Both the position numbers and the translations under genes were made by a program. This document shows positions 1-64,000 of a DNA stretch of 64,000 nucleotides, in pieces (positions within the stretch are counted from its first letter, which is position 1; each line of letters opens with the position of its first letter). The stretch comes from Mobula hypostoma (lineage: Eukaryota): assembly GCF_963921235.1 (NCBI RefSeq), contig NC_086109.1:12958001-13022000 (forward strand), read 5' to 3'. Below the pieces are notes generated by a model. That model was not told the DNA's origin, searched no databases, and saw only the letters and a list, made by a program, of their open reading frames with translations.

Positions 1-2
1 AG

Positions 3-41
3 AAGCCGGATGAATCAGCTCCTCCCAGACTGGTCTATAAG
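3..41 (+). CDS. Cytoplasmic micro-exon (KPDESAPPRLVYK) of an upstream paralogous Ig receptor gene (gene 0)
   Basis: AG at 1-2 and GTAAAC donor at 42; 39 nt, phase 0-0. Paralogous to 62283-62321 (KPDESDLHRLVYE); 3 of the 7 differences are silent third-position changes in this frame. The downstream intron 42-360 aligns with 62322-62640. Confidence 0.7.
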
Positions 42-9040: not shown

Positions 9041-11470
9041 TCTGTCCTATTTTGTAGAAATGGAGTGAAAAAGAGACACTAGCATGAACATTTCCAGTCA
9101 CTGTACAAAGGTCTCAAAGGAGAATGAGCAATGGAAATAAAAGTTGGGTGCTGAATAAAATGAGTGAGATGCAAATTATCACAGCTTGCTTCGGTCATTC
9201 GGGTGTGTAACTTATCTCAGTACTGATCTGTGACTGTAACCCATGATTGTATAATAAAGGTTCTTGAAAATAAGAGGTGAATTGCAATATTGTCGTTATA
9301 ATCATGAAGTTAGAAAATGCAAAGGACTATTCACTCCTTTTCAAGTTCAATCGGAAGTTCAAGTTTAATTGTCATTCAACCATGCACATGCGACAGCTAA
9401 ACAAAACAATGTTCCTCCGGAGCCAAGGTGAAAAACACAGAAGACAGTTACACACAGCACACACCACACAACACATATAGTTTAAAAAGCACATAGATAC
9501 ACAAAAATAAATAATGATGATAATAATAATATCAGTCCAAATCTCTGAGTGACATATCCGTCCTGAAGACTGATGGTGCAGGGGATATTGTCCCAGAGTG
9601 ACGTTTCTCCAACAAGTCCACAGCAGCTCTTTTTGAACTTTGATAAGGTGCACGACTACTGTCCTATTGTAACGCATGTTGAAGAAATGGAGTGAGAAAG
9701 AGACTCAAGCATGAAAATAAAGTTGGTGCTGATTAAAATGAGTGAGCTGCAAATTATTGCAGCTTGCATTGGTCATCAGGGTGTAAACCTGCAAACAGAC
9801 AGTGCAACTTTTCTCAGTACTAACATGTGCCTGTAACCCATAAATGTACATACATAGAATAAAATGTCTTGGAAACAAAACAGAAGGTGAACTTCATTAT
9901 TGTAACTACAATCAGGGTAGTATATGGTGACATATATGTACTCTGATAATAAATTTAATTTGAATTTTAAACTTTGAAATGCCTCAATGACAAGGAGGAA
10001 TATGGCACAATAGTCTTCACCTGCTGTGTGAGGATGTGAATCAAAAACGCTAGAGTCTGTTAGGAGCTCTTGACCTCTACAGGTCAGGGTTATCTGATGG
10101 GATTTGATTAGCCCGAGATAATTCCATTTACAGTGGTCCCACTTGTGAATCTGGTCCTTTTAAACCCAAATTTATTAATAGTCTGAGGGAATGAACTTGC
10201 TCGTTTTTTTTCTGCTGCAAAACAGGGAATTTTACATCAGAAGACAGTGAAAACAAACCTGATTTTGATTCTGAAAGGGGTTGTTTCCCTTTCTGAGGAC
10301 ATCCCAAAGCAATTCTCAGTGGATATGCTGAGAACATCCATGCTCTTTACTTGACTTACAAAACAGAATTTAAGGAAGTACCAATGGATGCCTCATGTAA
10401 ACAAATTGTTCCGTCATCCGCCTGCAGTGTTCCATCACTTAAGACCATAAGACCAGAAGACGATATTGCAGGAACATAATTAGGCCATTCAGCCCATCAA
10501 TCTGTGCCACCATTCTATAATGGCTGATTTATTATCCACCTCAGCCCCATTCTTCACATAACCTTCGACACCCTTACTAATCAAGAACCACCAACATCCA
10601 CTTTAAATATTCACAATGATGTAGTCTCCACAGCCTTCTTTTTCAATGAATTCCACAGATTCACCACTCTGACTGAAGAAATTCCTTCTCATCTCTGTTC
10701 AAAAGGGATGTCATTGTATTGTAGCTGTGCCCTCCGGTCCGAGACTCCCCATGATAAGAAACATTGTCTCTGCATACACTCCATCCAGGCCTTTCACTAT
10801 TCAAGAGGTTTCAATGAAATTTACCCCTCATTCTTCTAAACTCCAGCAAGTACAGGCCCAGAGTCATCCAATGCTCCTCATGTGTTAACCTTTCTCATTC
10901 CTGGGATCATTCCCATGAATCTCCTCTGGACCCTCTCCAAATACAGCACATCCTTTCATAGCTAGGGTTTCCTAAACTGTTCAACATATTCCAAGTGTAG
11001 TCTGACCAATACCTTATAAAGCCTCAGTTCTTTGATAACTTTCCAAAAACCGACTGGAAAACATTTTATGATCCCATAGTTGCATTTACAGCTGTGCACA
11101 GGATTGGGATTAATTTTAAACACAAAGGTCAAAAGGCCTTTTCTTCATGGAATTGTTATTGTTGTTCAATGATCTTGCTGAAACAAAAATGCTGGTCTGA
11201 AGATATTTTGCATCTCTGCCCTTGTTCTCATCAGCATATTGCACCATGGTTGTTGAGAAGTTTTCCAAGAAGTGATGGGGCAATGCAGGAAGAGGGTGGA
11301 ACAAATTGTTTATATATTGCATCTACTGGTACTTCTCTATATCTTCTTTGGTAAGATAAATAAAGAAGACAGAAGTTCGAACCACATCTTTTGCTGAGGG
11401 TGAAAATTACACAGATGACAGCAGTGACTGATACAACAGAGTCAGCTCTCATACTATATCCCAATGTACA
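9040..11470 (+). repeat. Segmental duplication block 2, copy 1 (paralog 34855-36650)
   Basis: Colinear similarity starting GTCCTATTTTGTAGAAATGGA in both copies. It includes a shared CR1 3' fragment at the same position (10441-11030 and about 35633-36200). Copy 1 has an extra repeat at about 9280-9690. Confidence 0.85.
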
Positions 11471-11858
11471 GAATTTAAGCAGATATACATTCGTGGCTAA
11501 TATACTGCACTGCTTTCCCCGAAAACAAATGTAACAAACCCAAAGTGATCCCCGGGATCAATAAAGTATGCCTATGACTATGACTATAAACAACCTAGAG
11601 ATTCATCTTCTAGCAGACATCCACAAAACAAAATAACACAATAGAATCCATGACAAACAGCATACAACATAGGCTGACAAATGTCCAATGTGCAAAAGAG
11701 GATCAATCGTGCAAATAATAAAAATATGTAAATAAATAATACATGGAACATGAGTCTCAGAGTCCCCGAAAGTGAGTCCACAGCTGCAGAGTCAGTTCAG
11801 TGCAGAGGAGAGTGACACTGGTCCTGGCATAGGACCCAAGATCCTGCTCCTCCCTCTC

Positions 11859-13765
11859 GATGGTAGTACTGAGAAGAGAGGGAGATGGGTCAAATACAGG
11901 CATATAGGATGGGCTCAGGTGGGGGGATCGTGCTGGCACAGAGTAATGGGGCTGAACACCGGTTTATTTTCTAGATCCCATTGTAAACTTCTGTTGTTTC
12001 CACTGCACTACAATATCACCCACAATTTATTAATCATGCCACCTACATTACAATTGCAAATTATCAAGACAGATGATAAATATCTGGTTAATAAATAAGA
12101 ACGCTGATCCAGACAACACGCAACTGGTGATGAAGTCTGATGTTGTCAGAAAAACAACACTCCACTACCAATCTTCTCCTTCCACCAAACCTATTCAGTA
12201 TCCATCCTTCTGCCTTATCATGTGATCCCACATTACAGACCAGTCTACTATGTGAAACTTTCTCAAAGACGTTGCTGATCTCCGTGTGCCAACCTCTATT
12301 GTCATAAGACCGTAAGATATAGGAGCAGAGTAGGCCATTTGGCCCATCGAGTCTGCTCCGCCATGGCAAATAACTTTGCCATACCTAATCTGTTCAGGCC
12401 TTTTAACATTCAGAATGTTTCTATGAGATCCCTCCTCATTCTCCTGAACTCCAGGGAATACAGCCCAAGAGCTGCCAGATGTTCCTCATATAGTAACCCT
12501 TTCATTCCTGCAATCATTCTTGTGAATCTTCTCTGAACCCTCTCCCTGCCCTCATCAGTCCTTTTGGTCACCTCTTCAAATAAACTCAGTCCATTTTTTT
12601 TGAGACATAATCTCTCAAGCACAAAACCATGTTGACAATCCAAAATCAGATCTAGCCTTTACAAATTCGGGTAGATCCTGTTTCACACAATCACCTCCAG
12701 TAAGTTACCCACCACTGATCTTATGCTCACCTGCCTGGAATGGGACTGGATCAGTAATCTATTGACTCAGAAATGTAGAAACACACCGAGACATTAGTGG
12801 GCAGTGATAATGATGACTCCAATCAAATAAAAATCATTACTTGTGAAGAGCTGTGAGCACGTGATGAGGGACAATGCTGTTGTCTTCTCAGTTTAATGTG
12901 GAATTCAATTGTACCAATTGACAGCGGGCAGATTCCTTAGAATGCAGTGACAGCTTTAAATAAAACATCTTTTCACATTGTGTTCTTTATCAATTGTGCT
13001 TATTTTTGTGAGCAGCATTCTATCCAAAGTAACAAGTATTTTGTCCTCCTTTGCACTTAGGTCCTGGAAGTGACATTAAACTATCTAGAATCTGCTTGAG
13101 TGAATTTGATTTTACCTGTCCATTTTCTGAAGAAATTCTCCCCCAGTTTCAGGTGCTTTATGGGCAGAAGATAAAGTAAGAGGAGTTGTGAGAAGATCAA
13201 TCACAATCGATTGTCACTATGCACCAATGTACCGTTCACACACGAAGTATTTGTGCCGCATGTGGGATCGTCAATGCACATCGTTAGTGAATACAAATGG
13301 GACAAATGAGCAGCATGGAAGAATGACAATCAGAGATAACACATCCCAGGGAATATTTACTGTTACTATGGAGAATCTTGTCTCTAATGATACAGAACTT
13401 TACAGATGTGGAATTACAACATCTGGCAATCATCCAGTGTTTGACGTGCATCTACAAGTATCTGACGGTAGGTTTCTCTTTGATTGACTTGATGTCCCCA
13501 CTGAAGTGTCTGATTCATATTTTCTCTGGGAAAGGTAAGGACAGCATGGATATCCTGAAGCTCCACAGCCATTCAGAGCACTGCAGGCTGTGGGCAGGAG
13601 TCGGGAAACTCCAGCCATGCTTCTTTCACTAAGTGTGGGGTCTGACCTACTGACTGGATACCAATTTCCAGTAGGAGACTCAGCATATTTTCCTGTCTTT
13701 GAACTGTATGAAATGTCAGAGATTTACATTCAGAATAAAGGTAGTAATCCAACAATAACAGGTCG
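11859..13765 (+). repeat. Segmental duplication block 3, copy 1 (paralog 53833-55005), containing the V exon
   Basis: Colinear intron similarity on both sides of the V exon, e.g. GGATGGGCTCAGGTGGGGGGATCGTG versus GGATGGGCTGAGGTGGGGGAATCGTG. Copy 1 carries extra sequence at about 12305-13015. Confidence 0.85.
13147..13467 (+). CDS. Locus A Ig V-domain exon, CD300/pIgR/TREM-like
   Basis: CCCCAG acceptor, GTAGGT donor, 321 nt, phase 1-1. Reads (V)SGALWAEDKVRG...TIDCHY...KYLCRMWDRQC...NDTELYRCG...LQVSD, with the B- and F-strand Cys plus the extra C-C' Cys pair typical of CD300/pIgR V domains. Confidence 0.93.
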
Positions 13766-14479
13766 ATGAGAAACAAGTGTTACTCAAGATCTAAATAACT
13801 TGAAAATCATAAAAAGGGAATCAGTTCTCAGAGCTAAACAGACTGTGTTCAGTCCTCCCAGGGCAGACTATTCCACATCCCATCCCTGTTTCATGGATCA
13901 GTCATCCCGTCCCTTATTCTGTGCTCTTTTTATCTGTCCCCATCAATGTGCTCCAATACTCCACCCCCCAGCACCCACTGACCATCCATTTCCCGGCAGC
14001 CAGACTCTCCATCGGACCGATCCCTGGTGGGAAATAGGGCAATGGAATTAGAGAGAACTTGGGACACAGTCCAGCACAAGAATGGACTCCATGACCCACC
14101 ATGTCTGCTCTGACCATGAAGTGATTCTAAGCTAATTCATGTGGTCCAGATCCCTCCAAACCCTCTCTTTTCATGTCCATGTCCGAAAGCACCTTATTGT
14201 CTCTGTTTCCACCAGCTGGTCTGACTGTGCATTCCACGCAGTCACCACCCGCAGTGTAAAACAAAACTTGTCTCGCAAACATCCTTTAAACTTTCCCACG
14301 ATCACCCTCAAACTATTATTATTAATACCATTATTTAATATTTCAACCCTGGAAAAAAGATTCCAATTATCTTCCCTATCTATGCCTTCTATAACATTTT
14401 AGACTTGTCACAGATCTCTCCAACACTCCAGCAAAAACAATCTGAGTTTGTCCAACTTCTGCCCACAGCTAATACACTC

Positions 14480-14780
14480 CAATCCAGGCAATATTTATTC
14501 CTATATTTATAGATTGATTTAAATTGAGCTACAGCAGAGAATAGGCACTTCCGGCCCTTCGAGCTATGCCATCCTAGATTTAACCCTATCCTAATCACTA
14601 GACAATTTTCAATGACCAATTAACCAATCAACCCATTGGTCTTTGGACAATGGGATGAAGCTGGAGCACCTGGAGGAAACCCACATGGTCACAGGGAGAC
14701 TGTACAAACTTCTTACAGACAGCGGTGGGAATTGAAACTTGGTCACTGGTACGGTTCACTACTAATTTACTGCGCCACCC
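14480..14780 (-). mobile_element. HE1/V-SINE-like tRNA-derived SINE (decayed)
   Basis: The reverse complement contains a GGTGCTCCAGCTTCATCCCATTGTCCAAAGAC-type central V domain. Borders approximate. Confidence 0.6.
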
Positions 14781-15064
14781 TGGTGAGATCATGGTTAACC
14801 TCTTTACACTCTCCAAAACCTCCACATCTTGAATAATGTGTTGCAACCAGAACTACATATTATGTTGCAAATGTGCCCTAACCAAAGTTTTTTCAAGCAC
14901 AAAGATGCCTTGTCAGCTTCAGTCTCCAACATGTAGAATGAAGAATGCAAACGTGCTGAATGCTTTCATTACCATTATGTCCACTTGTGTTGCCACTTTC
15001 ACGGAGCAATGGACTTGAACCCCAAGAACTCTCAGTACATCAATTCTAAAGGGATCCCAATATT

Positions 15065-16520
15065 AAATTCCAGGTGACATCAAACTTCACTAATGTATGA
15101 GGAGTGTTTGAAGGCTCTGCGCCTGTACTTGCTGGAGTTTAGAAGAATGAGGGAGGATCACATGGAAAGCTATCAAGTGTTGAAAAGCCCAGTGCGTACA
15201 GAGAGGATGTTTCCGATAGTGTGGATGTCTAGGACCAGAGAGCACAGACTCAGAATAGAAGGATGCAGCTTTAAAGAGGGATGAAGCTGGTGAATTTGTG
15301 GTAGCTGTGGACACCAATTCATTGGGGATATTTAAAGCAGGGGTTAATAGGGTCTTGATCAGTAAGGGTGTCAAAGATTACAGAAAGAAGACAGGAGAAT
15401 AGATTGAGAGGGATAAGAAATCAACCATGATGGAATGGTAGAGAAGACTCAATGGACTGCATCACTTAATTCTACTCCTATGTTCTATGGTCTTGTGGTC
15501 CATGGTCTTTCTGCTTCTCCAGTCTCACATGCGTCCTTGTTAGCTTCATATAGATATCATTACTAATGGGATCCCTTCCCCATGTCAAAAACATTGCTGA
15601 CTAGTCCTAATCATATTATGCTTCTCCAAATCTTCATAAATCCTGCCTTTCAGGATCTTCTCCATCAGCTTACTAACCACTGAAGTAAGACTAACTGGTC
15701 TATAATTTCCTAGGCTATCTCTACTCCCTTTCTTGAATAATGGAACAACATCCACAACCCTCCAATCCTCTTGAACCTCTCCCATCCCCATTGAAGATGC
15801 AAAGATCATTGCCAGAGGATCAGCAATCTCTTTTCTCACCTCCCACAGTAGCCTGGGGTATATCTTGTCCAGTCCCGGTGACTTATCCAACTTGATGCTT
15901 TCCGAAAGCACCAGCACATCCTCTTTCTTAATATCTATATGCTCAAGCTTGTATGACTGACAGCAGAGAAAACTGAGAGGAACCTATTGACACAAAGAAG
16001 GAAGATATGAACACCACCAAAGGCAGAGGACCTTCATTGCTGCCCTAAACACCAGTAGTGTAATGGGCAGTAAGTAAGTAGGTATGGAGTCTCAGAATAA
16101 CCTAAGATGTGAGACATTTAAGACTGGGATTAGGAAGGATTTGTTCTCCCAGAAAGTGGTGAACCTGTATTCAAGAAGCATTTAGTTATTTTTTTCAGAG
16201 GCAGGGAGATCAAGAGGAATGAGAAACAATTATTCTCCCAGAAATTAGGGTCCATTGAAAGGCAGAAAGTAGATAATCACCAATAATGGAGGAACGGTGA
16301 TGGAAAACTGATGTGATTGAAAACCAATAAACCTCCAAGTTCTGATACTCTGCATCCCAGAGAACATAAGGAATTGTCACAAGAAATAGTTGATACATTG
16401 CTGGCCGTTTGTAATTCCAATGGATTGAAGAAAAGCTAACAACTAATTTTAAAAGAGATAGAGACAAAAGCGGAAATTATAGAGCAATTAGCCTGACATT
16501 GGTATAAGGAAATGTGGTAA
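15065..16520. mobile_element. Cluster of decayed CR1 fragments in both orientations
   Basis: ORF 15093-15284 (+, RT C-terminus LYLLEFRRMR) and 15585-15917 (-, KSPGLDKIYP, NYRPVSLTSVV). Confidence 0.75.
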
Positions 16521-17379
16521 AGAAGGACCAAGGACAAAACCAATGTATTGAATTGGTCTTTTGTTTCTTTGTGCCCAGTATAAATTCCTCCATTTCTGTC
16601 TGTTAGATATCCTGTCTTTGTTTTAATTAATCTTCTCTTCACAAACTGATTGTAGTTATAGAGGTGCTCAGAAGGTGTGGCCATGTCTTCCACTTGCTAT
16701 GTATGATGGCCACGTATGAAAATGGGAACAAGTTTTGGCACAGACTAGAAGGGCCAAATGGCCTGTTTTCTGTGTTGTAGTGCTCTATGGTTCTAGGTAT
16801 GTATGTTCCCTGCAAACTTGCTCATGTTCTTTATTTTCAGTGTTTTAATAGGCTACTTTATATTATCTTGAATTCTAAACTATTTTGAGTACTCAGCTTA
16901 TCTGCTTTGTCTGAACATGACACGTTTTCTTGGATCTTATAGATTCACAAATTTCTTTCGAGAGTTGTACTTGATAATGTAAAAGCTTCTGAGGGGATCT
17001 CTTTAATGCATGAAATATTCCCTGAGGGATGGATGGAGTTCATGTTAAAAGGGACATTTCACAGGGTCTAGAATGTTGACAATTCCAGGAGAATATTGAT
17101 CATCATCTCATTCCTGTACTTAAGTCTATTACTCTGTGCAGTTTGAACAGATGTTTCAAAAATGGAAAGCTTTATTCAAATATCTGAGTGCTCACTGGAG
17201 GTGTAGGAACTCTCCCACCAGGAAGAGAATCAGGGAAATTATATGCATAGAAAGTTGTTGCCAGGATTTTATGACAGCTTCTGAGAATGGCTGAGGTTTC
17301 TGTCAGTAGTGCAAATGCAAAAAGCCAGTCCTGAGTAAGAGGAAGTAAATGAGTGAACAACATAAAAGTGAGACATTTT

Positions 17380-17650
17380 TTAAAAATTTCATTTATTTAG
17401 CAGTACACCACCACGTAGGCACCTCCAGGCATTTGAGCCACACTGGCCCCCAAACCCCGCCAATCATGATTAACCCTAACCTAATCGCGGGACAATTTAC
17501 AACAACAAGAGGATCCGGAGAAAATCTATGCATTCCACAGGGAGGATGTACAGAAACCCCTTACAGAATGGCTGTGGAACTAAACTCTGAACTCCAGAGC
17601 ACCCTGAGCTGTAATAGTGTCGCTCTAACTGCTACGCTACGGTGTCGCCC
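17380..17650 (-). mobile_element. HE1/V-SINE-like SINE
   Basis: The reverse complement begins GGCGACACCGTAGCGTAGCAGTTAGAGCG (tRNA A-box-like head) and ends in an A/T-rich tail. Confidence 0.75.
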
Positions 17651-18386
17651 ACTGTATATTGAATTTCTGTATATTGTTTAAAAAAGACCTTGCCTTTTTA
17701 TTGGGAAAACCTCCTGCAGTATCCTGTTGGATAGAAAGTGTCTGTGAGCCATTATCCCCCTGTATACTCAAGTACAGTCATGACCACATCTCTGCAGAGG
17801 GTGATGGAGCCCCAGAAAGAGATCTCCTCCTGCTGGCAGAGGCCAGCTCCCTGGCAGGACATTTCCCTTACGATTTCACACATTTAAATAGGATTATAGT
17901 TTCCTCAGTACTAGACCTTTCACTTCCCCAACAGCATCTCCACACCACCAGTTCCTGAATACAGAAAAGAATCCAAATTGTCAGTATATGTAATGGGGTG
18001 CACAGGAGAACAGCAATTAGTGTAACACTATTACAGCACCAGCCATCAGTTCTACCCATGACTGTGTGGGTTTCCTTCCACTTTCCAAAGATACATGGGT
18101 TAGTATTGGTAAGCTATAGCCAAGCCATTTTGGTGCTGGAAGCATGGAATACTTGCAGGCTGCCCCCAGCACATATTCCATGTTGGACGTTGCTGTAAAC
18201 GATGCTTTTCACTATGTGCTCTGATGTACATGTGACAAAAATTCTCATCTTTAATCTTTAAATGTGCATTGAGTAACAGATCACCTTTGGTCTACCATGC
18301 CCAAGTACCTATTGGTCTAACAATTGTGAGCTCTTGTTCTTGTAAGTGCAAAGCAGATGAAATTGAATTTTATTTTCTTTTAACAG

Positions 18387-18441
18387 GGCCAATTCATTTC
18401 TCTGAAAATACTGAGACAGAATCGATGACAACTGCACAAAG
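18387..18441 (+). CDS. Locus A stalk exon (GPIHFSENTETESMTTAQ)
   Basis: TTTTCTTTTAACAG acceptor and AG|GTAAGA donor. Open only in the phase-1 entry frame, Ser/Thr/Glu-rich, exits in phase 2 like the gene B stalk exon. Confidence 0.72.
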
Positions 18442-21400
18442 GTAAGAAACTATTTCTCCTCAAACGTAAGGGATAAGGTTCTCTCTACAGGTGGTTTCAC
18501 TGCTACTGCTTCCAGGCAGAGCAAGTTGGGAGAGAAATTTGGTGTTAAACACATTTGACATAAATAACTTCAATGAGCTCATGTCATGAAAATTGAGTAT
18601 TCCTGATTTTGTTGTATATGTGTCAAGTCTGAGATCACAGATAAATTTATTTCCCCAAATATTTAATAATTTAAGCACTGCAGCTGAAGCTCGTGTATAG
18701 AGTCATACAATCATTGTTATATATTAGAACAAAAGGCCCTTCATCCTGACTCATCCAAACCAACCAAAATGTTCATCTAAGCTCGGCACATTTAATTTTA
18801 TTTATCCTATATCCAGGGCTTCCCCACCTGGAGTCAAGTCCAGTCAAGTCAAGTTTATTGTCATTTAACTATATACATATTTACCATCAAATGAGACAAT
18901 GTTTCTCCTAACCAGCGTGTAAAGAACTGTAATATGCATAATGCATAATAACTTATGAAAGTGAGAATGAAATCTACACATAAATAAACAAACTAAAGTG
19001 CATAAATTAAGTTCTGTAAGGTACACAGCAGACTAACCAGTGACACTGACTCTATGGACCCCTCAGATATTGGTAGGGGCCCATGCATAAAAAAGTTTGT
19101 GAACCCCTATTCGAAGCCTTTCCTATCCACATGTCTGTCAAAATGTCTTTTGAACTTTGTAAATGTATCCACTGCTATAGATTGCTATGGCACCTTGTTC
19201 CATGTACTCAAGACCCTTTGTGAACAAGTTGCTCATCGGGTCCTTTCTCCACTCACTTTAAGTCTGCACATACTCACTTTACTGTTCCCTCCCCTTGTAA
19301 AAAGACAATGAGCATTCACCTTATCGATGCCCCTCATGATTTTATGTACCTCTGTTAAGTCACCCCTCAGCATTCTAATCAAGGGCAAACATCTCAGCCT
19401 ATCCAATCCTACATTATAACTCTAGCCCTCCATTTTCAGGAATATCCTCATGACATTTTTGCTGCACCATTTCCAGACTAATGATATCTTTACTATACCC
19501 AGGAGACCACAACTGCACTCACTAACATCTTGTACAGCCATAACATAACATAATAAACTTATACTCACTGCCCTGACTGACAAAGTAAGTGTATCAAATG
19601 CCACCCTGTCTACCTGTGTCACCACTTTCAGGCAACAATGTACCTGGAAACCTAGATCTTTTTTTTACAATACTCTCCATAGCATTCTCCTACCATTTAC
19701 TGTGTATGTCTTGCCCTGGTTTAACTTACCAAAATGCAAAACCTCCAACTTGAAAAACCCCATCACAATCCACTAACTCCTCCCACCAGGCCAATGTTAT
19801 ATTTAATTAGCTAGCTCACCCTGCATCCCACGTTGATCCAAATCTCTGGAGTTATCTCCATGTGGGTCCTTGTTAAAGGCCTTACTAAGGTTCATGTAGA
19901 CAACATCCACTACCCTGCCCTCATTAATCCTCTCTGTCTGTAATGAGCACTTTTGGCCTATGCAAGGAGCCAGAGAGCATTGAGCTCCAAAGTTTTTAAG
20001 AGCACCTGAATTATTTAATTGTAGTTTAAAAAGAGTTGTTAATCCTTTAGAGAGCCTTGGGTCTTTCTTGAATGACTCGCTCTTTGTAATATGGACCCTG
20101 GTGCTTTCTGTTTAAGCTTATTAAATTTATTTCAGTAAGCTCAGGAATTCCATGTTACTTGTATTACTTAAACAGACACCTGATTTGCACTAATCACAGG
20201 GTCCTATTTGAGAGTGTTCAGTCTGGTAGGTGCCAGTCAGCCAAGCCACCAATGTTCTGTTGGAATAAACTTTGGTGTCTGTCTCCACAATGGAGTTTGG
20301 CTTTCCTGCGCAATTGGGTTCCAACATTGCCGATGTACATCGTGACACTGTCACCTCTTCAAAAAGCTCATTCATATTCGTGAGAACTGATTTCCGATGC
20401 TGACTATCCTAATCAGCCTTGCTTATCCAATTGCTGGTAGATTCTCTTCCTCAGAATCTCCTCCAGTAATTTTCCTACCACTGATGTTGGTTTCATTGGC
20501 CTGCAGCTTCCTGGTGTGCCTTTGTACCCCTTTTTAAATAAAGCCACAGCATCTGCTATTGATCACCCAGACTTCTGTTACCTCATTTGTGGTAAAAATG
20601 ATGCAAGTATCACTATGAAGACCTTAGTCATTTATCCCTAGCTTTTCATACTACCCAGGGCTACAGTTGCTCAGGCCCTATGAAATTATCCAAAAACGTT
20701 ATTCTTCAAGACTGTCAGCAAGTCCTCATTTTAATGATAATATGTTCCAACAGAACACTATTCATTTCCCTTAATTCCTCATCTTCCATGACCAGCTTCA
20801 CAGTAAATACAGATGAGAAATATTAATTTAAGACCTCACCAGTCTCCTGTAGCTCAACATATGGATGATCATATTAATCATTATGGGAACCCATTCACTT
20901 CCTCGTTGCTCTTTTCCTTTTAATAGACTTATAAATCTCTCAGAATTCTTTTATCTTATCTCATTGAGTTATCTCATATCCTCTTTTTGCTTTTCTGATC
21001 TCCCTTCTAATTGCATATTTACAGTGATGCTAGACGTTTGTGAACGTTTCGCTCTAATATTGGATTATTTTTTCTCAATAAATCAATAAACAAGTATAAT
21101 GATATTTTGTGTCATTTATTTAGATTCTCTTCATCAAGTTTTAGGACTGATGTGAAGATCTGATCACATTTTAGGTCACATTTATGCAGAAATAAGAGAA
21201 AATTCTAAAGGGTTCACAAACTTCCTAGCACCTTTTATATTCCTTAAGGGATTCCAATGATCCCAGCTGCCTATACCTGTTAAATGCCTTGTTTTTCCTG
21301 ACCAGTATCTCAACACCCTTGTCAACCAGGATTTCCTAATTCTGCCTGTCTTGCACTTCACTCTAACAGGAACGTGCCATCCTTGAACTCGCCTGATCTG

Positions 21401-22899
21401 CAGCTCATCGGAATGGAAATGGCGTCATGTTTACATCACACTACTGTGTTATGTCTGTGGTGAGGAAACTAGAATAAATTCCTCCATTTGCCATGATTCA
21501 GAGGGTACTCCCTGTGGTGTTTACTATGACAGTCCCATGACTAACTCTATCCCAAGACATAAGTTGAATTGCAATGCTTCTTTACCACTGGCGCCACAGC
21601 AGAGAAAGTCACAGCAAGGCAAATTTCCTGGTGAACTACAGGCTGAGGGCATCACACTTCGAGTTATTTCTCTAAGTGCTGGCCATTGTAACAGCAGGAG
21701 ACATCTCATCTATAATGTGCCTTTGGAGGAGCTCATGTGATGTCAAACTGCTTGCCTTGAGATGTTCACTGTAGGTCTTCTGCTGGGTCTGTTGAAGATG
21801 TTCCACAGTCCAGAGGAGAAAAGATTTTGACATGAGGCCAGTAAGATCTCAACAATCAACGTCCAAGCCAATGTGGGATTTGGTGGGAGTTGCTTTTGTA
21901 GGAGAGCTGGTTTTAAGCGGATGCGGTGTTTCCTTTATTAGATCCTTCAACTGTGAGTGCAGTGGGATCTGTAGATATTACCTCAGCTTCTCCCCACATC
22001 CTGATTCTTACACACAAGTGTTCATACATATATAATTATACTTTTTGGATATTTGCAATAATTCATATTTTTATTTGATTTTTCATTACTTTTCACTGAC
22101 CTGGTAATTAAAGACCCAAATTTCACTGACATACTCTCTTCCTCTCCCCTCTTGCTGGGCAGCAAATACAAAAGCTAGAAAGCATGTACCACCAGGCTCT
22201 AGGATAGCTTCTATCCCAGTTATAAAACTGTTCGATGGCCTCAATGTTTTCATGGCAATTTCATGGCCTGACATGTTCTGCTGCTCTTCACCCGAACCTT
22301 GTGATTTTAACACCCAGCAAGGGCAGTTTCTCCACTAAGTATGGCTTCTGCATGCTTGAACCAAATATTTTGTTCATGCAGCAGAAACTTGAGAAAGTTC
22401 TTCAGCAATTACTGTAGTACTGAGGTTAAAGGCACATGTATTTATTATCGAAGTATTTATTCAGTAAACAACTCTGAGATTTATCTTCTTCAGAAAGCCA
22501 CGAAACAAAGAAAACCATGAGGGCCGTTCAAAGAAGAGGTTCAGCTACATGATCAGCAACGCTGTCTGTCAGAGAAGAAACCACCAATCAATCCTTTAAT
22601 GTAACAGTTTTAATGACATGTTTGTAAAAGAACATGGTAGGGATCTCAAATGACCTGGATAATAGTTACTCTTTAATCAACATCACACTCATTGGTCATG
22701 ATCACATTTCTACTTGTGAGACCTTGGAGTGAACAGATTGGCTGTTGCAAATTCCCACACGGTGAACAGTGTCTAATATTCATTTTATGAGCTGCAGGCA
22801 TCCTGAGCTCATGAAAAATGCTGTGTAAATGTCAGACTTTACAAATGGCCAAGAATAAGTGGTGAACCAAGGTTAATGCATTCCCATTCTTTATCACAG

Positions 22900-22983
22900 A
22901 ATTACTTACATAATTTTGCTCAGTGTCATTGGAATTCTTCTCAGTCGTTTGTCTAGTTTGCCACCTGAAGAGAAAAAACAGTG
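22900..22983 (+). CDS. Locus A transmembrane exon, frameshifted
   Basis: TTCCCATTCTTTATCACAG acceptor and GTAGGT donor. Phase-2 entry gives ITYIILLSVIGILL; the hydrophobic stretch and basic stop-transfer continue in another frame (VVCLVCHLKRKNS). Confidence 0.7.
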
Positions 22984-23253
22984 GTAGGTTTCTTTTCTCC
23001 TTTAAATGTTTCATGATGAATATGATAGCTAGCTTCTGAATCTTAAGGAACTTGATTTTGAAACAATCAATGAAAAGCTGGGATGTGCATTCGTACTGAT
23101 GTTTAGATATAGAACACATGAATGAATTGATCAGGTGTATCTTTTACCAATCTACCACTCACTGCATATCACTGGAGAAATTTCCCTACTCTCATTGTAC
23201 AAAGTTGTTGTAAATTAAGTCATGGGTCTGCTTTATTGAGATGATCCTGAGAT

Positions 23254-23567
23254 GGGCACCACAGTGGCGTAGAGGTTAGAGTGAAGCAATTACAATTCGG
23301 GGCATTTTGGAGTTCGGAGTTCAATTCCGGTGCCATTCTGTAAGGAGTCTGTACATCCTCCCTGTGGAATGCGTGGGTTTTCCCCGGGTGCTCTGGTTTC
23401 CTTCCACAGTCCAAAGACATTCTGAAGTGGTTAATTAGTCGTTGTAATTTGTCCCGTGATTAGGTTGGGGCTAATCAGGTTTGTTGAGGTTTGCTGGGTC
23501 AGCATGGCTGGAAGGGCCGGAAGGGCTGACCCTGCAATGCCCCACTAAATAAACAAACAAACAAATA
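23254..23567 (+). mobile_element. HE1/V-SINE-like SINE
   Basis: GGGCACCACAGTGGCGTAGAGGTTAG head, GGGTGCTCTGGTTTCCTTCCACAGTCCAAAGAC V core, (AAAC)n tail. Confidence 0.82.
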
Positions 23568-24372
23568 ACCTTGCTCTCTTAAATAAATCAGTGAAGAGAA
23601 CTGTGAGTACAGTGATCTCCTGTAGGTTATTATTAGACAGGGAAATGGGGTTGATCTTTGGAAAATAAAGTCCCTCCAAATGATTGGCCAATGGAATATA
23701 ACTCATTGGCTGAAAATTATGATTTTAATTTTCTCTGAGTCCCTGTTTGTTGCAAAGATCTGAACAAAAGGAGTGCATTCTTTTTCATAGAGAAATTCTC
23801 TAAATGATCAGTACTTGAGATAAAGGCAGAAAAGTGCTAACAACACTCAGCATGTAAGATGGCAGCTGTGGAGAGAGGAACAGCTAATCCTTCAAGGCAA
23901 TGACCTTACATCAAAACTGGAAAATGTGAGCGATAACAAGTCTTGAGGTGCAGAGAAAGTATGGAAGGAAGCACAAAAGAGAGGGTTTCTGACAGAGTAC
24001 AAGACAGAAAAAAATACATCAGAAAAGCTGACGTGTGGGCCGGCTGGACAGTTGGAAAATGAGGTGATTTTTATTTTGGGCAGTTTGTTCCTTCTGCCTG
24101 AGGGACAATCCAGAGTTTATCCCGTGATTAGTTCTTGATTGGATGCAGCATCAAAGGTTACGTGAGGAGGCTGGGAAATGGGGTTGAGGAGGGGACAAAA
24201 GGATCAGCCATGAATGAATGGTGGAGCAGACTCGATGGGCCAAATGGCCTAATTCTGCTCCTATTTCTTATGGTCTTTCTGAATATTGTGCAATAACCAG
24301 AGCAGAGGTTTGCTCTGCGTGGAGAATCATTACTGTGTTGCAGCCTGGGTTCCATGGTTCTGAGATTCAGTA

Positions 24373-24670
24373 TGGGGGTCATGGTAATGTAACAGTTTGC
24401 GCGAAGCTAGCTGTTCAATTCCAGTGCCGTTCTGAAAGGAGTCTCTGTATGTCCTCCCTGTGGGATGCGTGGATACACTCCGGGTCCTCCAGTTTCCTCC
24501 CAGAGTCCAAAGACGTACCAGGTAGGTGAATTGGTCAATGGAAATTGTCCCGTGATTAGGTTAGGGTTAATCTGGTTTGTCGGGGGTTACTGGGGTGGCG
24601 AAACTCAAAGGGCTGCAAGGGCCGACTCTGTGCTGTATCTATCTATCTATCTATCAATAAATAAATAAAT
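24373..24670 (+). mobile_element. HE1/V-SINE-like SINE
   Basis: V core CCGGGTCCTCCAGTTTCCTCCCAGAGTCCAAAGAC; (TATC)n(AAAT)n tail. Confidence 0.75.
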
Positions 24671-24723
24671 GTTTATGTCTGTTCCTGACATGGAATTTTT
24701 TTCAATAATATTGTATTTTCCAG

Positions 24724-24769
24724 AATGGAGCCCAAAACATCTCACAGAGAAGGCAACAATGACACCCAG
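24724..24769 (+). CDS. Locus A cytoplasmic exon 1 (MEPKTSHREGNNDTQ)
   Basis: TTGTATTTTCCAG acceptor and CAG|GTATGG donor; 46 nt. Phase 2 in and phase 0 out places the next exon in the ITIM frame. Confidence 0.65.
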
Positions 24770-25216
24770 GTATGGACATGGAGTATAAATTCTCTAATGC
24801 CTCAGAATGTTTAAAATTTGGATTTCATTGGAGTTTACAGATCATTCATCCCCAGTAGTCCAGTCCAGTATTAATATTTTACAAAAACTTCTGAACACTC
24901 CTCTCATTGAATCCCATCAGCATATCCTTCTAGTTAACTGTCCCTTTCTCTTGTGTTTATCCAGCTTTTCTTTAAGTGTATCTATAATATTTTATGTGAC
25001 TATTCTTGAAAGTGGCTCCAGTCTTTATTATCATTACCGAATGGTGAAAAGTGAGATTGGTCCTTTCTCTACTGTTAGAGATGGAGCATCTAATTGTGTA
25101 AATCTGTCTTTGGGTTCAATGACTTTTCAGTTTACATTTTGTATATTCCCTCTGAATCTCAAACTCTGATGTGAAATCAGAAAAAAATAGGGCAGGTCTA
25201 ATCAGAACAATTAATT

Positions 25217-25465
25217 GGGGATGGCACGGTAGCGTAGCGGTTAGCGTTACGTTATTACAGCGCCAGTGACCTGGGTTCAGTTCCACTCCTGTTTGTAAGG
25301 AGTTTGTATGTTCTCCCAGTGACTGAGTAGATCTCCTTTGGGTGCTCCGATTTCCTCCCACGTTCCAAAGAGGTTAGTAGGTTAATTTGGTCATATCGGT
25401 TTAATTGGGTAGTACGGGTTTATTGGGCCAGAATGGCCTGTTTCTATGCTGTATCTCTAAATAAG
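25217..25465 (+). mobile_element. HE1/V-SINE-like SINE with CR1-like 3' tail
   Basis: GGCACGGTAGCGTAGCGGTTAGC head, GGGTGCTCCGATTTCCTCCCACGTTCCAAAGA core. The tail GGGCCAGAATGGCCTGTTTCT matches the CR1 3' ends in this window. Confidence 0.85.
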
Positions 25466-26403
25466 TAAATATCTGTTCTGCGCTTACCTCACCCACCCAT
25501 TTTCTCACCCTACCCCTCAATTCTGACACCAGTATGAATAGTCTATTGACTCTTAGGTCTGTTATTAACAATCCTTGTTTGTGATATTTTCCACAATTTT
25601 CAACATGCGTGGTAAATGCAGGTTGGAAATTGTTCAAGGAACCTGCTCCCTTATGGGCATCATGTTCTCTCCAAGAGCTGTACCTTCAGAGAACTGTGTG
25701 TTCCTCTTGTGCATCCTCCACTCTCAGAATCCCACTACCAATGGCAGTCGCTTCAGCTGTCCAAATCCCACACACTGGACTCAACTCCATGAACTCCTGC
25801 AATTCTGTCCTCTTAACTTTTGATCGTTAAAGATGCAGCAGAGTAACAGTCCTCCTGGCCCACGAGCCTAATTCTCATTTATTTTCAACCTCTTCTCTTA
25901 CTGAACCCCTGTGAAACACCTAGGACCAGTTTAGTGTGTTGGTGTCGTAAAGCAACATGCTGTTCTTGTACATTTAGTAGCGGGTCCTCACTAAGGATCA
26001 CTGCTACTGAGTCATAAGCTGTTATCAAATATTCTGGAAAATTATAATTTACAAGCTGATTGAAAGGATCAAGGTTTATTTAAAGAGTGAAATCTGAGGG
26101 TGATCTGTTAGACGTCTGCGAGACTATCCGATTGTTTTATAGAGTAGTGAAGGTGCTTCCACATACAGATGAGAATAGAACTCAAGCTATAAACATAAGA
26201 TGGATACTTTTAAAAATCCAGGAACTTAAGACCATAAAACCATAAGGCGCAGAAGCAGAATTAGGCTTTAGGCTCATCAAGACTGCTCTGCCCCTCAATC
26301 ATGGCTGATTTGTTTATCTTTTCATCTCATGTTCCTGCCTTTTCCCTGTAACCTTTCACATCCATCAGTCATAGATACATTGTGAATTTATTCTTTATTT
26401 CAG

Positions 26404-26590
26404 GAAATGGCCACGTTGGAAGAAAATATCATTTATACAGATCTACACCATGTTCAAAACGCTGAGGCAGCTGCCCAATTGGCTAACAATGAAAATTGAA
26501 TTGTGTATGCAGATGTGAAATATAAAAGGTAATCAAGAGCAGTACACTCCGTTACTGATGAGGACAACGTTATCGATGCAGATATCAAAA
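26404..26590 (+). CDS. Locus A terminal exon with three tandem ITIM-like repeats, truncated by stops
   Basis: TTCTTTATTTCAG acceptor. Reads EMATLEENIIYTDLHH...ENEN-type repeat then TGA(26497) IVYADVKYKR TAA(26530) SRAVHSVTDEDNVIDADIK. IIYTDL and IVYADV fit (I/V/L/S)xYxx(L/V). Confidence 0.85.
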
Positions 26591-26723
26591 CCAACCCGCA
26601 AACCCCTAACAGAAAGCTTTCTTTCCCGGTACTGCACAGGAAACTTGTGTTGATTTTTAGGGAAATTGCTTACTTCAATCTACATTGTTTATTTCTCCAT
26701 CCTTGACTTATTGTTGTATTATA

Positions 26724-27652
26724 TATTTGGTGACCACTTTATTAGGTACCTCCTGTACCTCATAAAGTGGCCACTGAATGTATGTTTGTAGGCTTCTGCT
26801 GCTGTAGCCCATCCACTTCAACATTTGATGTGCTGTGCATTGAGAGATGTACTTCTGCATACCACTGTTGTAACGCATGGTTATTTAAGTTACTGTTGCC
26901 GTCCTGTCAGCTTGAACCAGTCTGGCCATTGTCCTCTATCGGACCTCTGTTTATTTTCTGATCCTTAGGGTTCTTCTGGGGGTCAGGAATGATGAGCAAT
27001 CTTAATTCTAATGATCACCTATTTTAAAGTACAAGCACACATACAAATACTCAGCAAACTAAATAAAGAGTGGAGAAACATTGCAAAGAGGTAAATGAAC
27101 AGCAAAGAATGCAAAGACAAGAAGATTGTGCCTCTGAAACACCCATCACTTTTATAGTTAAGGAAAATTTCTCAGATAAAGATAAACTAATTTATAGACT
27201 ACATCATGTGGGTAATGTGCTAATACTTAGCCCAATGAAAAATGAGAAAGCTGATACACTGTTAGCTTAACTGCTATACCGCTTTCTGCCAATAAGTGCC
27301 AGTGAGTAGTGATGAATCACCACATACTGTGAAAAATACATGAATTGTTGAAAAGTACAAATCTTCTATAAAAGTGTTATTTTAAAAAGCAGTGGTTTCC
27401 AACACCTCTGACCTCTCTCATTAGCAAACTTTTGCACTCACAGAACTGCCGCTCACTGGATGTTTTTTGTTCTGTAACATTTCTTCCACATTCCAATGTT
27501 TGATCTGAACAAGAACTGAACCTCTTGACCATGTCTGCATGCTTTTATGCAATGCATTTATGCATTGAGTTGCTGCCTGGCTGATTGGCTGATCAGATAT
27601 TTGCATTAACGATTTGGTGTATAGTTGTATCTAATAAAGTGGCCACTGAGTG
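26724..27652. mobile_element. Tc1/mariner-type MITE with about 455 bp of unrelated internal sequence
   Basis: Inverted termini TATTTGGTGACCACTTTATTAGGTAC and GTATCTAATAAAGTGGCCACTGAGTG, flanked by TA at 26722 and 27653. A related copy lies at about 46125. Confidence 0.7.
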
Positions 27653-29244: not shown

Positions 29245-30187
29245 GTAGATCAGTGCTCCAAAGGGTCCTGCCAGTCACAACATAATTTTGTATTGCATTT
29301 GACCTCCCAAAATGTAACACTTCGTGCATGTGGGTCACTCGGTGGGAGAGCATTTTGAAGACAGTGATCACAATGCTATCTCCTTTACCATAGCATTGAA
29401 GAGGGATAGGAGCAGACAACTTAGGAAAATGTTTAAATGGAGTAAGAGAAAACATGAAGCTATCAGACAGGAACTTGGAAGCATAAATTGGGAACAAATG
29501 TTCTCAGGGATATGTACGGCAGAAATGTGGCAAATGTTCGGGGGATATTTGCATGGCGTTCTACATAGGTATGTTCCAATGAGACAGGGAAAGGATGATA
29601 GGGTACAGGAGCCGTGGTGTACAAAGGCTGTTGATAATCTAGTCAAGAAGAAAAGAAAAGCTTACGAAAGGTTCCAAAAACTAGGTAATGATGAAGATCT
29701 AGAAAATTATAAGGCTAGCAGGAAGGAGCTTAAGAATGAAATTAGGAGAGCCAGAAGGGGCCATGAGAAGTCCCTGGCGAGCAGGATTAAGGAAAACCCC
29801 AAGGCATTCTACAAGTATATGAAGAGCAAGAGGATAAGACGTGAAAGAATAGGACCAATTAAGTGTGACAGTGGAAAAACGTGTATGGAACCGGAGGAGG
29901 CAGCAGAGGTACTTAATGAATACTTTGCTTCAGTATTCGCTACAGAATAGGACCTTGGCAATTGTAGGGATGACTTACAGCGGACTGAAAAACTTGAGCA
30001 TATAGACATTAAGAAAGAGGATGTACTGGAGCTTTTGGAAAGCATCAAGTTGGATAAACTACCGGGACCAGAGGAGATATACCCCAGGCTACTGTGGGAG
30101 GCAAGGGATGAGACTGCTGAGCTTCTGGCAATGATTTTTGCATCATCAAAGGGAATGGGAGAGGTTCCCTAGGATTGGAGAGTTGCA
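29245..30187 (+). mobile_element. CR1 ORF2 fragment (between endonuclease and RT)
   Basis: ORF 29324-29950 (DSDHNAISF, ENPKAFYKY, LNEYFASVF). Further decayed minus-strand CR1 sequence lies at about 28570-29245. Confidence 0.85.
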
Positions 30188-44141: not shown

Positions 44142-44178
44142 ATGTGGACTTTGATTCTTCTGATTGGTCTCCTACCCG
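44142..44178 (+). CDS. Gene B leader exon (MWTLILLIGLLP)
   Basis: ATG in GCAATGT context, a hydrophobic 12-mer, and a G|GTGAGT donor in phase 1. Joined to V1 it gives the signal peptide MWTLILLIGLLPVSGA. Confidence 0.85.
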
Positions 44179-45438: not shown

Positions 45439-45759
45439 TTTCAGGTGCATTGTGGGCGGAGGAAAATGTAAGAGGAGTTGTGGGAAGAGCGATCACAATC
45501 GATTGTCACTATGAAGCAAAGTACCGCTCACACACAAAGTATTGGTGCCGTAGATGGAAACACCAATGTTCAGTTTTAGTGGAAACAAATGGGCAACATG
45601 GACGGAGTGGACGTGTGTCAATCACAGATAACCCGGAACAGAGAATATTTACTGTTACTATGGAGGACCTTCACTCTGAAGATAAAGGACGGTACATCTG
45701 TGGAATTGCACCACTAAGTATTGATAAAGGATTTATTGTAGATCTACAAGTCTCTGATG
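45439..45759 (+). CDS. Gene B V1 exon, CD300/pIgR/TREM-like Ig V domain
   Basis: TTCTTCAG acceptor, GTAGGT donor, 321 nt, phase 1-1. Contains TIDCHY, KYWCRRWKHQC and EDKGRYICG. Confidence 0.95.
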
Positions 45760-61936: not shown

Positions 61937-62027
61937 TTTCATGATATGGGAAGTGGGTTGTTGGGTACTCTTCGCTCTCCTGATGATCGGCACGAGTTCA
62001 GTCATGTGGTTCACAAGAGAAACTAAG
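61937..62027 (+). CDS. Gene B transmembrane exon (FMIWEVGCWVLFALLMIGTSSVMWFTRETK)
   Basis: CTCTTCCTCTTTGCTCAG acceptor and AAG|GTAGGC donor; 91 nt. Phase 2 in and phase 0 out matches both neighbours; hydrophobic stretch followed by R/K. Confidence 0.82.
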
Positions 62028-62282: not shown

Positions 62283-62321
62283 AAACCTGATGAATCAGAT
62301 CTTCACAGACTGGTCTACGAG
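62283..62321 (+). CDS. Gene B cytoplasmic micro-exon (KPDESDLHRLVYE)
   Basis: CCTTTTACAG acceptor, GAG|GTAAAG donor, phase 0-0; paralog at 3-41. No convincing terminal exon was found before 64000, where the window ends in a pyrimidine tract. Confidence 0.75.
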
Positions 62322-64000
62322 GTAAAGTGAAGGCTCCTGGATCACACAGATTGTGCTGGAATTTTACACAAAGATCAAATATTCATTCTTCTTCCCACTT
62401 TGTGCAGCTTTATCATTTGTGGAGAATTAACCTCTCATCTTACAATTGTTAACTTCATGAAGGTGAAAAAATGTTACCATACTTCAAGACAGTAACTTTT
62501 GTTTTATCATTCTATTTCTAACATGTCACTCTCACTGGTCTCAATCATATGGCACCTTTTCACAATGTTTTTTTTTCGTTGCACAAGCACCAATTTTTAA
62601 CCCTACCATCGCTGTGAACTGCTTAAGACCATTTTACTCTATCAAATGCTGTTCTATGGATTCAAATGCCTGAGGTTGTTGTACGTTTCAATAACTAATA
62701 AATAATCAATTAATATTCTTATAATAAATTGCTGATGTTAATAAGTAATTTATCCTCTCGGTTTAGTTGAGAATGAAATTTCATAAATGGTGAACACATC
62801 ACATTCAAGTTCCTGGATTTTCTTGATGGAATCAAGACCATAAGACCATAAACACAGGAGCAGGATAAGGCCATTTGGCCTGTAAAGTTTGCTTCGGCAT
62901 TCTATCATAGCTGATTTATTATCCTAGTGAACCCTATTCTTCTGTCTTCTCCCTGTAAGCTTTAATGCCCTCACTAATGAAGAACCTATCTACCTTCGCT
63001 TTAAATATACCCAGTGACTTAGTCTCCACAGCCATCCATGGTAATCAATTACACAGATTCACCACTCTCTGGCAAAGGATATTCCTCCTCATTTCTGTTC
63101 TAGAGGGAAGTCCCTCCATTATGAGACTGGCCTTTGGTCCTAGGCTCCTGTATTATTGGAAACTGTATTTAATATTACAGTTCTGTTTGAGTAATCTTGT
63201 GTGCCTGTGTGTATTTGTTTGATTAACCTTTTTTTGGTCATTTAAATAATAAATTATGAGTTACATGTATAAATATGAGCAAGCATGATGACGTATACAA
63301 TTCACATGATACATGCACGCCTCACTTGAAGTAAAGAATGAAGTTAGACCCACATTATTGAAGCACAGTGAAAGATTTGAAGTTAAAAAAATGCTGCAAG
63401 TTAAAAGAAATCATAGCCCAGCATGTGCAGAGATGGTCAAGTTTAATAAAAAAGCAGCACAGCACATGTTCTTCTGAAGGGAGGACACAATCAAGACTGA
63501 ACGGCTTAGGACCATTTTACTCTATTAAACCCTTTTCTATAGATTCAGATCCCTGAGGTTCTTGTTGTTGGATGTTCCAGTAACTAATAAATCAATTAAA
63601 ATTATTCTTTTTAAACTCTCATTGTAATTTTTTGTACTTTTTATAAGATATTAGTTGAATTAATGCAAGACCAAAATCATTGTTTTACTCGTAGTTTCTT
63701 TTTAACTGACATAATTTGTATTTGCAACAATTTGTATCTTTAACAAACTCATGTTTCACGGTATGTGGTGGTTCATCCCCACTTGCTGGCAGAAAGTGAT
63801 ATAGCAGTTACTTACTGGTTTATTATACCTTTTCATTTTTTAATTGGCTAAATGTTAGCACATAATACACATTATGATTGTGTAGCATTTTAATTCATTT
63901 ATCTTTATCTAAGGAATTTTTGTTATCTGGATTATAAAGATTTTTCAAAACTGCAATATTGAAGCTATGGAATATCTTTAATTTCTCGCCTCTCTTCTGC

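Follow-up and report, generated by a model that had tools for sequence, protein, structure and literature searches.

MDIR-family loci in a devil ray: a probable decayed ITIM-bearing remnant and an intact short-tail gene

In the 64,000-nt window of Mobula hypostoma DNA that we analysed (GCF_963921235.1, NC_086109.1:12,958,001-13,022,000, forward strand), two loci with Ig exons, A and B, lie on the same strand 31 kb apart, with B downstream (Table 1). They have opposite tail types and differ in their number of Ig exons, with one in A and four in B. Gene B is intact and complete within the window, with canonical splice sites and a 501-aa open frame arranged as L-V1-C2a-V2-C2b-stalk-TM-tail. Locus A consists of five exons, all of which retain AG/GT splice sites. 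Its closest guide is P0183, an intact 479-aa RefSeq protein of Mobula hypostoma with the order L-V1-C2a-V2-short stalk-TM and three ITIM-like motifs. P0183 is not encoded in the window, where its best match (92%) is to the V exon only, and of 13 Mobula homologues the window encodes not one at >92% identity.

Table 1. Exons and related features of locus A and gene B (positions in the window).
Feature	Position	Strand	Remarks
Intron-derived sequence 5′ of A V	11861..12243	+	79% to B C2a-V2 intron 53835-54232 (self-BLAST)
A V-set exon, V2 type	13147..13467	+	open frame, AG/GT sites, phase 1 at both ends
A stalk exon, GPIHFSENTETESMTTAQR	18387..18441	+	intact, inhibitory type, donor AG|GTAAGA
A TM exon, broken	22900..22983	+	net -8 nt, extra TG before donor
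A cytoplasmic exon 1 (..TSHREGNNDTQ)	24724..24769	+	91% to P0152 over 11 residues
Decayed A last exon (ITIM motifs)	26404..26640	+	stops, lost Tyr, frameshift
B leader exon (MWTLILLIGLLP.)	44142..44178	+	
B V1 exon	45439..45759	+	Pfam V-set
B C2a exon	50832..51152	+	
B V2 exon	54403..54723	+	partner of A V in the 27/321 comparison
B C2b exon	56199..56519	+	subtype accompanying short-tail TM exons
B stalk exon (CGYSYEDIPVEPTA.)	59124..59169	+	
B TM exon, FMIWEVGCWVLFALLMIGTSSVMWFTRETK	61937..62027	+	edge Glu; Cys at family-invariant Arg position
B last exon (KPDESDLHRLVYEVK, stop)	62283..62330	+	without ITIM

The preliminary description had allowed that the ITIM-type exons of A might belong to a different gene from its V exon, but they match P0183 in order, strand and splice phase. 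Searches for leader, V1 and C2 exons in 1-13146 and 13468-27000 found none, the window beginning 13 kb 5′ of the A V exon. Since the sequence upstream of this exon is homologous to the B C2a-V2 intron, A V derives from an internal exon (V2) and not from a leader-proximal one. Both A and P0183 pass from V2 directly to the stalk, without C2b. A weak tblastn match at 18239-18386, considered as a C2b remnant before the A stalk, is polypyrimidine tract plus intron; the C2 exon search was empty there, and intact P0183 has no C2b either. Likewise, the TAA at 18443-18445 is not a lesion but intronic, because the P0183 stalk stops at the same point (..TQR|HTY..) and the donor precedes the TAA.

Scored against four intact homologues (P0008, P0009, P0183 and P0152), locus A shows six or more independent lesions. 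In the TM core, one base (22943) replaces 9 nt of all four homologues, shortening the hydrophobic run to 14 residues, and the codon at the TM/cytoplasmic exon 1 junction is TGA. The last exon contains in-frame stops (TGA 26497-26499 and TAA 26530-26532) and a deletion of ∼7 nt after ∼26586 that is followed by another TAA in the restored frame; this deletion and that of 8 nt in the TM exon were deduced from protein alignments, not from intact-paralogue DNA. The ITIM repeats previously ascribed to A are present in part: IIYTDL and IVYADV are retained as sequences, but the third motif has been lost (VIDADI, Tyr to Asp at 26575-26577) and the exon has stops. As the spliced frame ends at the TM/cytoplasmic exon 1 junction, A has no usable cytoplasmic ITIM. 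In agreement with the earlier view that the ITIM-type copy had decayed, A appears from its sequence to be a relic of the family that no longer works as an inhibitory member, and would make no receptor. Some transcription or V-exon use at A is possible, since the splice sites are kept and the open V exon lies near the family consensus.

RNA and DNA contigs covering the 3′ part of A (20750-26749) were mostly transposon copies. No A-specific RNA contig was found on this interval, although the contig sets are small and unable to prove silence. The sole RNA contig there is a paralogue product, because it has 26 mismatches in 168 nt. At position 26530, contigs of paralogues in the same organism have an adenine where locus A has T. 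In X5, a DNA run of a second organism, a depth of 6.3 out of 77.8 keeps the T, which equals the depth of a near-identical contig, and this arithmetic suggests that the TAA at 26530 is common to the second organism. One X5 contig, on 26431-26749, differs by 4 substitutions and 7 gap letters and may retain the ∼7 nt missing from A. A half-depth X1 contig (C at 22956, T at 22962) was considered as a second haplotype of the source individual, but it encodes the P0183 residues Leu and Tyr and is therefore a paralogue, not an allele. Decay confined to this haplotype, as had been proposed, is not supported, given the number of lesions and the stop that X5 seems to share.

For gene B, the tail is 21 residues long and stops where homologues such as P0003 also end. 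ITIM exons further downstream, which would have changed its assignment in the preliminary description, were looked for and none was present through its last exon. The motif W[K/E]VGRW occurs in six homologues, where its invariant Arg borders a 17-residue TM core. In B, Cys replaces this Arg and only a Glu is kept, four residues outside the best 19-residue window. The Glu and the short tail had been reported correctly, but the Glu lies on the outer margin of the hydrophobic core and is not clearly inside it. Short-tail members would signal via an adaptor held by the TM Arg, which is lost in B, and the role of activating partner assigned to B is therefore only putative.

Our recount of the V comparison gave exactly the earlier figure: A V and B V2 differ at 27 of 321 nt with 0 gaps, and the stalk, TM and tail exons of the two loci are unrelated. 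However, "nearly the same V domain" does not hold for the protein, where 20 of 106 residues differ and identity is just 81%. The third V exon, B V1, differs from A V at 80 of 321 nt, and Pfam assigns V-set to all three. Similarity around V extends over 13022-13761 and 54288-55009, with only ∼300 nt of common intron 3′ of V (self-BLAST), and identity falls steeply at the exon borders: the exon is 8.4% divergent, compared with ∼17% mismatches in BLAST-aligned flanks and ∼29% in a global alignment. Together with a synonymous divergence of 0.075, this would fit a late exchange of the V exon between A and B.

The MDIR family was described in 2006 in the clearnose skate (Cannon et al., Immunogenetics 58:362, cited in PMC3031540). 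Skate MDIR3, MDIR5 and MDIR2 were retrieved with the intact homologue P0008 (MDIR3, 56% identity over 98%). A V is 64% identical to MDIR3, the A ITIM exon matches MDIR2 (E 7e-8) and the B TM exon matches MDIR5 (E 2e-4); indeed, all B exons but the leader, stalk and last exon align to MDIR proteins. On this sequence evidence, we assign A and B to the MDIR family ("pIgR-like" in RefSeq). The prediction of a chondrichthyan family with one V type on both ITIM and charged-TM short tails is borne out by the skate MDIRs and the ray homologues. It is not a new system, because skate MDIR3 (ITIM) and MDIR5 (short tail), whose ectodomains are 81% identical as far as the TM, already show the combination.

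Homologues contain one to seven V-type stretches. The relationships of V2 domains argue against A and B as a matched pair. A V shares 92.5% amino acid identity with P0183 V2 and 88-90% with V2 domains of other rays, compared with 81% for B V2. In a tree of 42 V2-type domains, A and B were not joined, and B V2 sits on a long terminal branch. On this tree, tail type changes 13 times for short-tail and 9 times for ITIM, compared with 13.7 and 9.1 for shuffled labels, so tail type is scattered at random across the V2 tree of the rays. The C2b subtype tracks tail type. True pairs do exist within the MDIR family: a Narcine gene model comprises two tandem units with ectodomains ∼99% identical and opposite tails.

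Taken together, we consider it likely, with good confidence, that A is a non-functional, 5′-truncated remnant of an ITIM-bearing MDIR gene and B an intact MDIR5-type gene, the two reflecting family turnover and no dedicated pair. From V on, the A layout (V2-short stalk-TM-cytoplasmic exon 1-ITIM tail) corresponds to the 3′ half of P0183. The family would evolve by tandem duplication plus recombination or conversion within the intron that follows V2, with exchanges joining common N-terminal modules to tail-specific 3′ cassettes, and this would explain why A and B both have a V2-type exon. Intact ITIM-type relatives would be expected to recruit SHP phosphatases.

An improbable alternative is that A is dead as a receptor while its V exon is preserved, either as a conversion donor for functional V2 exons or as a cassette exon for an upstream unit. 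The open frame with both splice sites would suit such a role, as would the distribution of change: of the 20 residue differences between A and B, 13 are derived in B V2 and 5 in A V, and the stalk, TM and tail exons of A are only 63-83% identical to P0183, well below the V exon (92%). The drop in A-B identity at the exon borders points the same way. However, with ∼8 substitutions in 106 codons a frame often stays open by chance, and the dN/dS of 1.27 for the V exon is indistinguishable from neutral (p=0.82). Moreover, the A version of the exon was in no RNA contig of the organism, and only 16-19% of A V-exon words were present in its RNA runs (contig sets, not raw reads). Very unlikely is the reading that A and B form a genuine inhibitory/activating pair, almost identical in the domain that binds ligand, and that the inhibitory member was lost only recently or only in this haplotype: adjacency on one strand, the V2-type exon in common, the possible late V-exon exchange and the Narcine precedent favour it, whereas the closer kinship of A V to P0183 and other rays, the separate places of A and B on the tree, the unequal Ig exons, the many lesions of A with a stop apparently shared by X5 and the missing TM arginine of B all oppose it.

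Under family turnover, A and B appear to be separate members of one family instead of a dedicated pair. This is ordinary turnover within a gene family and no new kind of system. It adds a devil ray example, mapped exon by exon, to a receptor family first described in 2006, and it places the junction of shared and tail-specific modules in the intron after V2, with V2-type domains swapping freely between ITIM-type and short-tail members across rays. The map is also useful for annotating such clusters, where the RefSeq labels pIgR-like and FCRL5-like mislead and models are sometimes fused. The lost TM arginine of B is a smaller point that bears on how short-tail MDIRs signal. If the A V exon were nevertheless a reservoir used by exon-limited conversion or splicing, pseudogene cassettes would help to diversify an innate receptor family.

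Clusters in which related ectodomains are carried on ITIM tails or on charged-TM/short tails include CD300A/CD300C, KIR, LILR, SIRP and Ly49. In a search of solved structures, the V domain shared the fold class of CD300 (CLM-1, E 6e-17), but pIgR domains matched better (E 6e-43) and the A/B family consists of multi-domain V-C2 mosaics. Unlike mammalian paired receptors, A and B share 81% identity in just one domain and are not mutual nearest relatives. Within the ray itself, P0183 agrees with A from V2 on in its exon order, its splice phases and the point where the stalk ends, but is complete and open. The nearest published parallel is the skate, in which similar ectodomains on different tails are already on record. 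MDIR5 is reportedly without typical activating or inhibitory motifs. The skate MDIRs belong to another batoid lineage, and they differ from the ray loci in that A is a broken fragment and B has Cys for the TM Arg. Like the ray loci, they are built from varying numbers of pIgR/CD300-type V and FcR-like C2 domains in alternation (V-C2-V-C2 in B), and they include both ITIM-tailed members (MDIR2 and MDIR3) and MDIR5, which combines a short tail with the WKVGRW type of TM.

The window, vertebrate DNA with zero N runs, contains a decayed ITIM-type modular domain immune-type receptor (MDIR) fragment (locus A) adjoining an intact MDIR5-type gene (gene B). A preliminary description had proposed these as an inhibitory/activating pair with near-identical V domains; its observation is confirmed, while its interpretation is partly supported. 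On recount, the V exon of A and the V2 exon of B differ at exactly the 27 of 321 nt described, gap-free (20 of 106 residues), and A's V differs from B V1 at 80 of 321 nt. The upstream intron is also homologous (11861-12243 in A and 53835-54232 in B; 79%), and homology continues for ~300 nt 3′ of A's V exon, to 13761; A's V was therefore derived from an internal V2 exon. Past 13761, the common sequence consists of transposon copies only. The receptor exons are embedded in transposon-rich introns and spacers.

In a full HMMER scan, A's V domain, which is of the pIgR/CD300 class, had 1972 relatives at E <= 0.001. The best were multi-domain ray and skate proteins, and RefSeq labels these relatives "polymeric immunoglobulin receptor-like" or "Fc receptor-like 5". 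Named clearnose skate MDIR3, MDIR5 and MDIR2 were among the matches to P0008, an intact 597-aa stingray protein. When aligned directly, MDIR3 was 64% identical to A's V, MDIR2 matched A's ITIM exon (E 7e-8) and MDIR5 matched B's TM exon (E 2e-4). A Rhinoraja longicauda protein, P0063 (760 aa, 'TRIM69-like'), carries, besides RING, B-box and SPRY families, a V-set domain that shares 63% identity with A's V; this model is probably a fusion of adjoining genes.

Receptor exons and transposon-derived fragments in the window
Feature	Position	Strand	Remarks
Reverse-transcriptase-like fragments	1363-2598, 7048-7368, 15588-15896, 29771-30190, 40428-41025, 51670-52956	both	matches to C-terminal part of P0094
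Locus A V-set exon	13147-13467	+	AG/GT
Locus A stalk exon	18387-18441	+	AG/GT
Locus A TM exon	22900-22983	+	AG/GT
Locus A cytoplasmic exon 1	24724-24769	+	AG/GT
Locus A last exon	from 26404	+	AG/GT
Gene B V1, V-set exon	45439-45759	+	
Gene B V2, V-set exon	54403-54723	+	
Gene B TM exon	61937-62027	+	encodes FMIWEVGCWVLFALLMIGTSSVMWFTRETK
Gene B last exon	stop 62328-62330	+	adds KPDESDLHRLVYEVK

Using intact homologues as guides, the exons of locus A were mapped, and all five have AG/GT sites. In P0183, an intact inhibitory M. hypostoma paralogue (479 aa), V2 leads directly to a short stalk (..TQR|HTY..), followed by the TM and three ITIM-like motifs. Because this organisation is the same, A's layout is a normal variant within the family. 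Two candidate lesions were ruled out by this comparison: the absent C2b exon, since intact P0183 also lacks C2b, and the TAA at 18443, since the P0183 stalk terminates at the same residue as A's. Exon order, strand and phases in A are those of P0183, which supports the assignment of the tail exons to the same gene as A's V.

The genuine lesions of A lie in its TM and last exons. In the TM exon, three codons present in four homologues are reduced to one base (22943; net -8 nt), leaving a hydrophobic run of 14 residues, and an additional TG preceding the donor makes the junction codon TGA after splicing. The last exon has an in-frame TGA (26497-26499), an in-frame TAA (26530-26532), a Tyr to Asp change in the third ITIM-like motif (26575-26577) and, further 3′, a ~7-nt deletion and then one more TAA once the frame is restored. 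The conceptual product terminates ahead of any ITIM, and no leader, V1 or C2 exons were found upstream of A in 1-13146. A 312-aa database protein, P0005, reads through a V2-type exon donor into an intron resembling A's 13468-13622; it could represent a secreted V-V isoform or an error of the gene model.

DNA contigs from the source organism showed zero differences from 20750-26749. Other contigs from this organism are paralogues, with A at 26530 (a Lys codon replacing the stop), C at 22956 and T at 22962, the latter two giving exactly P0183's residues. The sole RNA contig over A's tail had 26 mismatches in 168 nt; its start at 26401 confirms the exon boundary in a paralogue that is expressed, rather than in A itself. 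The organism's RNA runs covered 1% of the sequence words in 20700-26700 and 16–19% of those in A's V exon, with no sign of A-specific RNA in these small contig sets, which leave silence unproven. In DNA run X5, from a second organism, T at 26530 was retained at a depth of 6.3/77.8, which equals that of a contig near-identical to A's last exon. This depth arithmetic, as opposed to direct reading, suggests that the TAA at 26530 is not confined to one haplotype. The decay of A is real, but its proposed restriction to this haplotype is disfavoured. Compared with 26431-26749 (A's last exon and 3′ flank), an X5 contig (record 32) has 4 substitutions and 7 gap letters, which might be the ~7 nt absent in A; unique X5 sequence near this interval is apparently 3–10% divergent.

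The eight exons of gene B give an open 501-aa frame (leader, V1, C2a, V2, C2b, stalk, TM and tail) with canonical splice sites throughout. The leader peptide is 92% identical (11/12 residues) to that of a Mobula hypostoma protein. No ITIM was found through the final stop, and the C-terminus of a homologue, P0003, coincides with gene B's end, so the tail is complete and ITIM-free. Six homologues of B's tail type, including skate MDIR5, share the W[K/E]VGRW motif, whose Arg is invariant; gene B has Cys (TGT) instead. A rough hydrophobicity estimate places the family Arg on the border of a 17-residue core that is itself marginal, and B's Glu 4 residues outside B's best 19-residue window. The Glu on which B had been proposed as a charged-TM activating receptor is thus present but borderline in location, and the activating class is putative only. 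As judged from the sequence, Cys in place of the Arg may have cost gene B the adaptor contact typical of this TM type, or given it a cysteine at the membrane. In B V1, KGRYIC replaces TGWY.C of its relatives, with loss of the conserved Trp preceding the second Cys, and the best identity to any sampled domain is <=79%.

A dedicated A/B pair is contradicted by nearer relatives of A's V, which shares 92.5% protein identity with P0183 V2 and 88–90% with V2 from Mobula birostris and Hemitrygon akajei, in proteins with either tail type, compared with only 81% for B V2. When polarised with 7 outgroup domains, 13 of the 20 A/B differences were derived in B and 5 in A (2 ambiguous). In agreement, A and B V2 were not grouped together on a maximum-likelihood tree of 42 V2-type domains (terminal branches 0.051 for A and 0.14 for B). 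These comparisons argue that A and B are not a pair. On the same tree, tail type required about as many changes as under shuffled labels, with 13 for the short-tail type (13.7 shuffled) and 9 for the ITIM type (9.1 shuffled); C2b subtype, unlike V2, tracks tail type. Therefore, family members combine N-terminal modules held in common with 3′ cassettes (C2b or short stalk, then TM and tail) specific to each tail type, and the two parts meet in the intron after V2, the point where A/B homology stops. Several of B V2's 13 derived replacements fall in the CC′/C′C″ and FG loop regions; with the long branch, they could reflect rapid evolution, or weaker constraint on a gene that is otherwise intact.

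A/B identity falls at the V-exon borders, from 8.4% divergence within the exon (synonymous divergence 0.075) to flank mismatches of ~17% (BLAST-aligned) or ~29% (global flank alignment). The V-exon dN/dS of 1.27 was indistinguishable from neutral (p=0.82). Relative to P0183, A's V is 92% preserved and its tail exons 63–83%. These values are suggestive of post-duplication exon-limited exchange, or of a chimeric origin of A, and come from ~70 synonymous sites in one sequence pair, from which direction and function are not readable.

Similar ectodomains on opposite tails are real at the family level and already known. Published skate MDIR3 has an ITIM tail and MDIR5 a short one; across 463 residues of ectodomain the two share 81% identity, and from the TM onward they differ. 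The clearest true pair of the family is mis-annotated as a single protein, the Narcine bancroftii RefSeq model P0016 (1059 aa), in which the ectodomains of two tandem units match at ~99% as far as the TM. From there, one unit continues into an IWEVGRW TM and the other into an ITIM tail, with transposon-like sequence between the units.
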